DNA from: Paraphysomonas bandaiensis
Taxonomy: Eukaryota > Protista > Chrysophyceae
DNA: 64,000 nt
Direction of reading: 5' to 3'
Assembly: GCA_965644295.1 (NCBI GenBank)
Contig: CBFFRP010000133.1
Span: 248,001 to 312,000 of the forward strand
The translations under genes and the position numbers were made by a program. Below, piece after piece: positions 17,501-20,500 of this stretch (positions are counted from its first letter, which is position 1; each line of letters opens with the position of its first letter). Under the pieces are notes generated by a model. The model was not told the DNA's origin. It worked only from the letters and a program-made list of their open reading frames with translations, and searched no databases.

Positions 17501-20500
17501 TGAAGGTCACTTGCCAAGTGCTCAAATACGATGGATTCCAAAAGGCCACGCTGCCAATGAGCTTCAGAAAATTGCACACGAGCGGATGAGTATCAGGGTT
17601 CATTTGGAACTCAGCAACCAAGAGAGCCAATTTGACAATCAGGGAACGACTGTTTTCGTCCGGAGCGCTCGTGATCGTATTGACAACCTTGAACCCATCG
17701 CACACCTTGCGGCACTCCACATCCGCCTCTTGAATCTCCGGCGGCGGATCCAACAGACCAATCAAGACACACACCACGCCGTCCGCAACTTCCCACATGT
17801 TTGTGTGGCACTCTAATGAGAAATTCAAGTGCTGCAGAATCTCAAGCTCCAGCAGCATGCGCTGGTGCATTGCATTTTGTCGGCAAGTGGAAAAGATCGC
17901 ATGGCAGCCTAAGCTAATCAACTGGATATCCTTAGGGAAGTTCTTAAAGGCGCCCAATATCAACTCATTGTACCGAGACCGGACCAGGTCCTGTTGCACT
18001 TTCTTGCTGCTATTGCATGCCGTCGCTAAGATCAACGCAACGCATTTCTGCAGCGACGCGGCGGAGATATGCTCACCCTGCTCGTCGACTTGCAGGGCTT
18101 CCATGATGCCCTCCTCAAACTCCTTCCGCAATTCACTAAAGTTTACAGTCACAGTTCCGGTATTACTTCTGGGCGACGTACTGTTCGAATTGGCATAAGT
18201 GTTGTTGTTATTATAAGCCGGGCCGGCTGATACAGTTCTCGACATGGTGCGATACACCCCCCTTGATATCGAGTTTTGATGGGTGCGGTCGCCTTGTTTG
18301 TCGCGAATTCCAATCGCCACCTTGTTGTCGAGTTTGAATTTAGCCATAGCGCTTAGAAACAAATTAAGGGGTGAGTCCTGCTGCAGCAGCGTCGCAATTC
18401 GATCTTCTGCGGGGCAAATCAAATCAATGAACTCGGCAGTTGAATTTTTCTTTGCGTCCAAGTGATCATCCACGAATACCTTGCTTCCTGTGTTCACGAT
18501 ATGGGACAGAAGGCCGATGGCGCCTTCTTGAATGCGGAAATGGTCGGGATACGCTCGCAGCACATTCATGAGGGTTTCGATCATCGAGGCAGAGGCAAAG
18601 TACAGGAATTTCTCAATAAGGTCCGGGTCGAATATGCCTGATTCACAGGTGCGAAACAGTGTGAAGAGACAGGCCTCTATGATTTGCTCCTTCAGCTGCG
18701 ATTCCTCCATCGAGTGCTGCATATGATAGTCAATGATGGAAAACAAGCAGTCTAGCACCTCGCCCCATCTGTAGCCATCTTTCGCCAAGGACGTCATAGG
18801 CGTGGCGCTGCTGCCGGGGCTCAGAGTGTTAGCAGGTCTCGGATCCAGCAAATTCTGCAACGGGAAACACCCCACGGCTCGGGAACACTCAATGACCGTG
18901 TCGTCATCCTTGGCATGTTTTTTGATCGATTGCAGGAGGAAATCCAAAATATGCCCATTGTACAGGCTCTTCAGCATAGACGGGGCGAGATGACTCAGAG
19001 ACACCACAGCAGATGCCGCATTCTCCACGAGACGAGCATCATCTCCAAACTTCCGAAAGGCAGAGAAGACAACTTGGCATAGATCATTTTCCAAGTTAAA
19101 TGAAGTGCTGCTGCTCTGAAAGTCGATATCGATGGCGGACTTGCGGTGGAGGAGCGCCGCCAGAGTGGACAGCGAGTGCCGCATAATCTGCCCCTCATAG
19201 AAATCTTGCAAATTTTTCGCGGCGGCGGCGTGAATCACTCGCAAAATCGACGCGCAGAGGTTCTGCCACGTGTCTTCCTCGTCAGTGGAGCCGTGCTCGT
19301 CCATGGACAGATCCCGCAGATAGTCGAAACACTTCATCACAATGCCAATCTGAGAATTGTGATTGTCCAAGTAGATGCATTCCATGTAGCAGGAGATGGT
19401 CGAGTGGTCACGATAGCGATACGCACACAACAGAGCCGCCTCGAGCTTCTCCTTTGCGATCCCCGTCTCTTCATACTCCAGCAGTTTCTCGGCGTCGTTC
19501 GTATTGACACTCTCAGGAAATCGCAATCGAATGCGACCCTCTGCGAGAGGGGGAAAGTTCTGAGCGCGAGGCGTAGAGGCCTTGTCTGCAGGGGTCGTGG
19601 TGGACATCTTCGACACGTGGTTCGACACATCAGATATCGTCGAATAGGTGCTCGCCCCGCTGTCCAGGGTGCTGTACAGGGTGTCGCCCTCACCAAAGGC
19701 GGCTGTCTTCAAATCACGCAGTTCTGTATACGTGACATCTAGCTGAATCGACTCCGTGGCGTAATCACTGTGCAGCTGAGAGAGCTGCTTGTACACAGAC
19801 TCCATCGTCGGCTGGCGATCATATTCCTCCCAGCACTGCCGCATAATCTCCGCATAGCGTGGGTCCAAATCTGCCGGCAGAGAAGGGTTGCCCTGTCCAG
19901 AAAGCTTCAGCTGCTCCACCTCTTCCTCGCTCAGCCGAGAATGAGGGACCTGACGGGTGCACATCTCATACATCACACAGCCGAAAGAGTATATATCTGT
20001 GTGACGGTCTATGCGGGGGTTAGAGGGAGACCCTGCGTTGACCACCCACTCGGGCATCCATCGCTTGGGCCGAGGGTGAACGAAGGTCGTATATGCCCGC
20101 TGCAAACCCATCCTCTCCATCTCGATTTCATACTGCGTCTCAAACACCTCCCCCTTGGAGTGCCACCACTCGTCGATCTTCTGCTTACGTAGCTTGTGCT
20201 GGTCCAGCATCTCGCTCTCCATGGCAGCACACCCGAAGTCCCCCAGTTTGGGCCTTTTACTGGCATCCAATAAGATATTGCGGGCCGCGATATCCAAGTG
20301 AATGATGCCTTTGGCGTGAATGCGCGCGATGGCAGAGGCGACGTCTCGAGCGATGCGGATCATCTGCAGCAGCACCGGGTTGGCCACCCCGTTCTCCGCC
20401 TCGATTCGATTGCGATGATTCCCAGGGTGAAAGATGGACTCATCGTCGCTCTTATCCGCCGTTTCCAATTCCAGCTGAAGGGCAAACTTACACATAAACT

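Follow-up and report, generated by a model that had tools for sequence, protein, structure and literature searches.

Candidate phosphotyrosine docking motifs in the linker of a chrysophyte tyrosine-type kinase encoded beside a Cbl-like SH2 gene

Signalling systems that combine a tyrosine kinase as writer, a docking site and an SH2 reader are usually described for animals, their unicellular relatives and some amoebae. The known system nearest to the locus reported here is the docking of the Cbl TKB domain on activated tyrosine kinases: this domain binds (NX/R)pY(S/T)XXP in animal tyrosine kinases and in Sprouty, with a preference for pY-(S/T), and its site in EGFR reads pY1069-S-S-D-P (PMC2943896). 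Our subject is a window of 64,000 nucleotides from the chrysophyte Paraphysomonas bandaiensis (contig CBFFRP010000133.1, positions 248,001 to 312,000), in which a minus-strand gene encodes a kinase followed by four tyrosine-containing hexapeptides (SDYATE, VTYTEL, TLYSTL and STYSTI), and a divergently transcribed neighbour encodes a protein with an SH2 domain. A first-pass annotation, made from the sequence, had taken the four for a cluster of sites resembling immunoreceptor tyrosine-based inhibition and switch motifs (ITIM and ITSM), autophosphorylated and bound by the neighbouring SH2 protein. We find that only two of the four, TLYSTL and STYSTI, are real docking candidates, as both are exposed and repeat a short linear motif conserved in the kinase family; judged from sequence, their tyrosines, Y386 and Y396, may when phosphorylated be bound by the Cbl-like neighbour. 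The system differs from Cbl docking in its motif grammar, in its RING-less reader and in its stramenopile host.

Two further described systems bear comparison. The docking tyrosines of receptor tyrosine kinases, such as the FGFR tail bound by the C-terminal SH2 domain of PLC-gamma (PDB 5eg3) and the linker between the kinase and SAM domains of Eph receptors, likewise lie in a disordered segment after a tyrosine-type fold, and there too SAM domains occur in the same protein and a partner SH2 domain is at hand. Unlike these receptors, the Paraphysomonas kinase is a cytosolic multi-domain protein of the non-RD type (HLD) with a large insertion in its activation segment, and its linker tyrosines are putative phosphorylation sites. 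In Dictyostelium and Acanthamoeba, SH2 signalling, including CBL-like SH2 proteins, has been described together with TKL or TK kinases (PMC4053784; PMC3085826). Paraphysomonas resembles them in being a lineage outside the animals that has SH2 readers and kinases of a type that can form phosphotyrosine, but the two genera are Amoebozoa. To our knowledge, neither of them has been described as pairing kinase and reader at the gene level. Our literature search retrieved no work joining tyrosine kinases, SH2 domains and chrysophytes, and nothing relevant on the evolution of Cbl.

All four hexapeptides were found exactly as annotated behind the kinase domain, at amino acids (aa) 355-399 (window positions 19635-19769, minus strand) of a 1553-aa open reading frame (ORF) at 16170-20831 on the minus strand, from whose start residue numbers are counted throughout. 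Within this single protein their clustering is not exceptional: the densest 42-residue segment holds five tyrosines, a number that 2117 of 5000 shuffled sequences reach, and the whole protein contains four ITIM-like matches, where shuffles average 2.7 and 29% of them reach four. The ITIM and ITSM sites of immunoreceptor tails are read by SHP-1/2, SHIP and SAP. The ITIM expression (I/V/L/S)xYxx(L/V/I) is matched by two of the four named hexapeptides, VTYTEL and STYSTI, whereas the ITSM expression TxYxx(V/I) has no match anywhere in the 1553-aa ORF. The tyrosines lie, unlike those of ITIM and ITSM, in the linker of a cytosolic kinase, with no membrane receptor, and what is conserved around them is positions +1 and +2, not -2. 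With the ITIM-like matches at chance level besides, the ITIM/ITSM label is inapplicable, and both single-protein tyrosine clustering and ITIM/ITSM matching were dropped as evidence.

A signal above chance appears only at the level of the kinase family, where the linker carries Y-[S/G/A]-[S/T], often with a hydrophobic residue following. The kinase alignment comprised 15 full-length relatives (29-39% identity) and two paralogues from contigs; a word search with a 16-sequence full-length kinase profile yielded no new members. Since alignment evidence is soft where a linker is full of gaps, linker tyrosines were also counted free of alignment, taking all 25 of them in 17 sequences. Ser follows directly in 15 (background 0.16; p 5e-7 relative to the composition of the linker), and 22 have Ser, Gly or Ala at this +1 position; at +2, 16 have Ser or Thr; +3 is hydrophobic in 12 (background 0.17), and -2 is Ser, Ala or Gly in 17. 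The strict form Y[SGA][ST] was counted 15 times, in 9 of 18 linkers; none of 5000 composition-preserving shuffles gave as many (mean 2.7, maximum 9). The motif recurs zero to four times per linker between the kinase and the ARM-like domain of these chrysophyte proteins, within sequence that is otherwise unconserved. Extra copies at non-homologous positions in three relatives (P0002, P0003 and P0004) follow the same pattern, and the motif is present on both sides of a deep kinase tree (branch lengths 0.65-1.5).

The fate of each tyrosine in the alignment was read together with an AlphaFold model of aa 1-640, built with 17 sequences (mean predicted local distance difference test, pLDDT, 83; predicted template modelling score, pTM, 0.81). 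Conservation relative to the flanking linker, the check proposed for the annotation, turned out favourably for Y396 and, in a structural context, for Y368, and unfavourably for Y357 and for the position of Y386. SDYATE (aa 355-360; 19752-19769, minus strand) belongs to the last helix of the kinase fold: the model has a helix at 343-358, with pLDDT of about 90 or more, that contains Y347 and Y357, and in the structural alignment the kinase fold ends at about aa 358. As solved kinases align to the model only as far as aa 353-364, Y357 falls inside the fold and the helix of Y368 is an extension of it. Column 357 holds Leu, Ile or Met in all 16 relatives and Tyr in none of them; in the model, Y357 takes a predicted buried hydrophobic position of that last helix. 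SDYATE was therefore rejected as an SH2 docking site, its tyrosine being both unconserved and part of the folded kinase.

VTYTEL (aa 366-371; 19719-19736, minus strand) opens a conserved amphipathic helix, modelled at aa 366-379 (19695-19736, minus strand; pLDDT 82 dropping to 67), beyond the canonical kinase fold. Its tyrosine is near-invariant: of 18 sequences, 17 have Tyr in column 368 and the other (P0005) has Phe, always within Y-x-x-[L/F/I/M]-x-x-hydrophobic, and these 18 sequences are only 32-46% identical to the window's protein in the N-terminal part. Because Y368 lies on the hydrophobic face of the helix and is retained even in paralogues from which the linker motif was lost (P0007, P0009 and P0076), it is probably a packing or otherwise structural residue, or a regulatory one, rather than an SH2 docking site; its placement is read from pLDDT and secondary structure, from which its contacts are deduced. 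On the model, an SH2 domain could bind Y368 only if helix 366-379 unfolded.

The remaining two hexapeptides fall into a stretch modelled as disordered (aa 381-424, pLDDT below 50; 19560-19691, minus strand), the Ser/Thr-rich linker that joins the kinase to the ARM-like helical domain. TLYSTL (aa 384-389; 19665-19682, minus strand; pLDDT 34) is an additional copy of the linker motif peculiar to this lineage, with Tyr in column 386 in none of 16 relatives, so that the position is not conserved. STYSTI (aa 394-399; 19635-19652, minus strand; pLDDT 26-34) is the positionally conserved copy, with Tyr in 13 of 17 aligned relatives and Phe once (P0014) at column 396, within an otherwise scrambled linker. 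By accessibility, then, Y386 and Y396 qualify as docking tyrosines, Y357 in its well-modelled helix does not, and Y368 is doubtful. The annotated Ser/Thr-rich, disordered linker is borne out in composition (Ser plus Thr 29% over aa 355-432) and, for disorder, within aa 381-424 only, SDYATE and VTYTEL being helical.

Tyrosine kinases are marked by a catalytic loop that carries Arg at D+4 but lacks Lys at D+2 (the HRDLAARN type) and by P-x-[K/R]-W in the P+1 loop. The kinase fold of the window's protein (aa ~15-358; 19758-20789, minus strand), delimited by Pfam, model and structural alignment, matches the Pfam family PK_Tyr_Ser-Thr with E 9.5e-34. Its catalytic loop, HLDIAARN (20277-20300), fits this pattern at both positions and is conserved across the family, with H178, D180, R184 and N185 invariant; its P+1 loop reads RPKRWMPEW, of which P-K-R-W is likewise conserved. 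The best sequence matches in the PDB are choanoflagellate RTKC8 (1.7e-22) and the insulin receptor (1.7e-19), followed by B-Raf (4e-16), and the best 50 structural matches are all tyrosine kinases (Z 28.5-29.9). By its loops and by its nearest solved relatives alike, the active site is of the tyrosine-kinase type. As the Lys, Glu, Asp, Asn and DFG residues (DFG at 20232-20240) are all present, the kinase, although non-RD, should be active. We also note that the insertion in its activation segment spans about 58 residues (aa 201-258; 20058-20231, minus strand) and is predicted to form three helices.

The neighbour is a plus-strand gene (22140-23900) with exons at 22140-22276, 22330-22700, 22765-23551 and from 23604 onward, delimited by GT..AG joints in RNA. 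Searches were run per exon or ORF, and P0022, a natural transcript-derived relative 95% identical to the window's SH2 ORF (Paraphysomonas transcriptome MMETSP1103, taxid 36769), stood in the alignments for the joined neighbour protein. Its assignment to SH2 rests on a family scan, a profile search and the fold, since the window's ORF alone stays below the threshold of Pfam SH2 (E 0.015). Pfam SH2 is matched by 14 of 24 members of the neighbour's family (best E 8e-7) and Cbl_N2 weakly by 4 of 24, and a search of the PDB with the family profile retrieved SH2 domains and nothing else. While a word search for SH2 relatives gave nothing beyond the query's own cluster, an exhaustive profile search gave 48 relatives or representatives, and a metagenome scan gave one locus, at the same place as one of the loci discussed below (L006). 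The phosphotyrosine-pocket residues R139, R165, S167 and H189 do not vary among 24 sequences.

The neighbour is modelled (pLDDT 87.5) as an EF-hand and an SH2 domain joined in a single packed unit like that of Cbl TKB (model residues 21-241; 22785-23447, plus strand; SH2 proper at about 23118-23375), as delimited by model, profile and alignment. The best 49 Foldseek matches are all Cbl and so are the best 34 rows of VIA-align, all of them Cbl TKB; the alignment to the EF-hand and SH2 of Cbl-b (170-342) covers 161 residues with Z 13.9 and a root-mean-square deviation of 2.8 Å, isolated SH2 domains reaching a Z of about 10. The ends of the model are of low confidence, as the ORF used (22725-23570) begins with about 13 and ends with about 6 intron-derived residues. 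The N-terminal four-helix bundle of a Cbl TKB domain, if there is one here, would fall in exon 22330-22700. An identity as a Cbl-family E3 ligase was considered and discarded: none of the 24 members scanned, full-length P0022 included, has a RING family match. As a separate feature, the C-termini of the TKB-like proteins (window 23604-23862, plus strand, and relatives) share a conserved G-x-Y-M-x-x-x-G-L-x-L-L-x-x-x-G that has no Pfam match.

The two genes are kept together beyond this window. In three lineages the gene immediately upstream of the SAM-kinase gene is an SH2 gene: in the window, in L006 (43% identical; L009 is a duplicate assembly of it), where the two genes are divergent as in the window, and in L008 (40% identical), where both are on the same strand. 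In L007 the contig begins at the kinase, and the contigs of further SH2 relatives (L010-L012) are too short for adjacency to be judged; upstream of the SH2 relative on the short contig L010 there is no SAM match. The kinase, single-copy in the window's genome, is tandemly duplicated in L005, L006 and L007, and the tree separates these copies into two supported clades, k1 and k2. The k1 clade, which is the SH2-adjacent copy in L006, keeps the linker motif or a near-match, and the distal k2 copy lost it. Overall, the motif is present in 3 of 3 SH2-adjacent kinases against 1 of 4 others, small numbers in both cases. Apart from these comparisons, the L008 genes (L008:347-7878, plus strand) follow each other as SH2-like gene, SAM exons and kinase on one strand with gaps of about 160-200 bp; they might conceivably be transcribed as a fusion. 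Genes with TIR domains (L005:1625-2338 and 22643-23173; L007:13956-14726) lie on the flanks of the kinase pair in two of the contigs, and in L005 a TIR gene occupies the place of the SH2 gene.

The annotation had regarded the hexapeptides as independent support for a functional pair of kinase and SH2 protein. In part this holds: the tyrosine-type active site, the intact Cbl TKB-like SH2 pocket, the gene neighbourhood kept in three lineages and the fact that the non-adjacent tandem paralogue has lost the motif all point that way, but not all four hexapeptides contribute. In the reading that we prefer, to which we give a probability of roughly 0.35, the kinase would phosphorylate the Y-S-S/T tyrosines of its linker, either in cis or from one molecule to another; the phosphorylated sites would be bound by the SH2 pocket of the neighbour, a Cbl TKB-like protein without a RING; and an adaptor or regulator would thereby be recruited to the active kinase, much as the Cbl TKB domain is recruited to pY-S/T of activated animal tyrosine kinases. 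Docking at the neighbour's SH2 domain, as annotated, is thus plausible for TLYSTL and STYSTI, while SDYATE is rejected and VTYTEL is probably structural or regulatory.

Several likenesses to Cbl favour this reading. As in Cbl TKB sites, the linker tyrosines lie in a flexible segment of a tyrosine-type kinase and are followed by Ser or Thr at +1 (YS, YS and YT in the window's protein) and often at +2, and the putative reader has an EF-hand and SH2 fold with its phosphotyrosine pocket intact. The differences are that the reader lacks the RING and linker-helix E3 module, that the host is a stramenopile, and that the Asn at pY-2 or Arg at pY-1 and the Pro at pY+4 required in metazoans are mostly absent, with +3 tending to be hydrophobic instead. 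These sequence differences, which weigh against the proposed docking, can be put in figures: Asn occupies pY-2 in 2 of 25 linker sites, and at pY-1 the frequent residues do not include Arg, the window's protein having T-L-Y and S-T-Y; Pro occupies pY+4 in 2 of 25, and the window's protein has D and S there. On the same side of the balance stand the absence of the strict motif from half of the family's linkers, the fact that motif counts are not phylogenetically independent and that aligners tend to stack rare tyrosines in gappy regions, and the fit of about half of the motif copies to the patterns of other tyrosine signals treated below. L005, moreover, has a kinase pair with no SH2 gene within about 3.6 kb, yet its first kinase keeps one motif; the genome contains at least three further SH2-bearing genes that could provide the reader; and the classical protein tyrosine phosphatase family (PF00102) has no more than weak matches in the genome.

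A broader claim would be that chrysophytes carry a genomically linked phosphotyrosine module, in which a tyrosine-type kinase as writer, Y-S-S/T sites in its linker and a RING-less Cbl TKB-like reader are expressed from a shared divergent promoter region; we hold this to be possible but rather doubtful. If it is true, recognition between kinase and TKB domain is either far older than Holozoa and Amoebozoa or has arisen independently in the chrysophyte lineage. If the linker motif is a docking site, it provides a small testable system of one kinase, two peptides and one reader, and the locus would offer a route to the evolution of kinase-SH2 recognition outside animals and to the role of a Cbl TKB domain without its ubiquitin-ligase part.

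Other explanations start from the same linker. Its tyrosines might be phosphorylated but read by another SH2 protein, or act in cis within the kinase or the kinase-ARM arrangement, the neighbour being merely a genomic one. Such an outcome would agree with the retained motif of the L005 kinase that has no adjacent SH2 gene, with the missing metazoan determinants at pY-2 and pY+4, and with the other SH2-bearing ORFs of the genome (one with Cbl_N2 and SH2, one with CHAT, NACHT and SH2, and one of 1146 aa with SH2); adjacency kept in three lineages, in two orientations and beside kinases only 33-35% identical, together with the loss of the motif from the paralogue that lies away from the SH2 gene, makes it unlikely in our judgement. 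We consider slightly less probable again that the signal does not depend on phosphorylation. Adaptor-binding YxxPhi signals and the LC3-interacting region (LIR, equivalent to the AIM of Atg8 binding), whose consensus [W/F/Y]xx[L/I/V] has Ser/Thr or acidic residues on its flanks, would be in keeping with a PX protein that probably acts on endosomal or autophagic membranes, and PX and WD40 domains do occur in the kinase family. YSTL, YSTI and YTEL all fit Yxx[LIV], hydrophobic residues exceed the background at +3, each conserved column shows Phe for Tyr once, and about half of the copies share the aromatic-x-x-aliphatic core with Ser/Thr or acidic flanks. However, both signals need the hydrophobic +3 that the other half of the copies lack, LIR uses Trp, Phe and Tyr freely whereas here Tyr is almost exclusive, Trp is never seen and Phe is rare, and the strongest constraint, for small or hydroxyl residues at +1 and +2, is a feature of neither.

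Low-complexity domains contain [G/S]Y[G/S] units, and the linker tyrosines, flanked by small residues on both sides, resemble them. The linker could accordingly be a Ser/Thr phospho-regulatory or low-complexity segment in which [S/G/A]-Y-[S/G/A] provides weak aromatic stickers or a context for Ser/Thr kinases, with no role for phosphotyrosine; its Ser plus Thr content of 12-38% in most relatives would agree with this. We find this improbable, as zero to four copies per protein are too few for multivalency, the enrichment of the motif survives shuffles that preserve composition, and a tyrosine-type active site and a phosphotyrosine reader lie right beside the linker. Still more improbable, in our view, is that the cluster has no function, its tyrosines being chance products of a Ser/Thr/Tyr-rich spacer and the family pattern a result of inheritance and alignment bias. 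The chance-level tyrosine density and ITIM-like count of the window's protein, the lack of conservation at Y357 and Y386 and the linkers without the strict motif would all be expected on that account; the shuffles that never reach the observed motif count, the common pattern of the non-homologous extra copies, and the persistence of Y368 at low sequence identity would not.

RNA supports the models of both genes. Transcript contigs of about 7.1-7.2 kb from three RNA runs join 19300-20908, 20964-21379 and 21430-21731 across introns of 55 and 50 nt (GT..AG, minus strand), and spliced contigs cover 19300-20908 without a single difference, so that the kinase exon is transcribed; because these joints link the exons, it is part of one mRNA that starts with the SAM exons. 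The large exon (16170-20908, minus strand) encodes the kinase with its linker, the ARM-like region and the first part of the PX domain; its upper bound is an RNA joint and its lower bound the end of the ORF rather than a mapped boundary. The open frame extends 26 codons upstream of the ORF start, to 1579 aa in all. The two SAM-region exons (20964-21379 and 21430-21731; together 20964-21731, minus strand) match SAM_2 of Pfam. The kinase transcripts are long enough to reach a WD40 ORF at 14520-16139, and two relatives, P0003 and P0013 (the latter from the chrysophyte Epipyxis), have SAM, PX and WD40 on a single protein according to Pfam. The architecture of the kinase gene is SAM-kinase-ARM-PX-WD40, a cytosolic protein. 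The neighbour is transcribed divergently as a separate plus-strand mRNA of about 1.7 kb, which is also present in a polyA marine metatranscriptome; the 5' ends of the kinase and neighbour transcripts are about 410 bp apart, and both genes are spliced and expressed.

Some minor observations concern the other SH2 genes of the genome and the rest of the window. A more canonical Cbl-like ORF of 188 aa (G000:C281, L015:3393-3956, minus strand) clears the Pfam thresholds of the Cbl_N2 EF-hand (E 1.1e-5) as well as of SH2 (E 9e-13). A 962-aa frame with CHAT, NACHT and a C-terminal SH2 (G000:C132, L014:1632-4517, plus strand) is unusual and resembles a STAND NTPase with a phosphotyrosine reader. A 1146-aa frame (G000:C363, L013:3240-6677, plus strand) has one SH2 and no other Pfam match and adjoins an ORF with Rav1p_C. 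Note also that positions 1-8000 of the window are AT-rich (GC 0.36) and strongly asymmetric between the strands, with a GC skew of about +0.3 and an AT skew of about -0.3.

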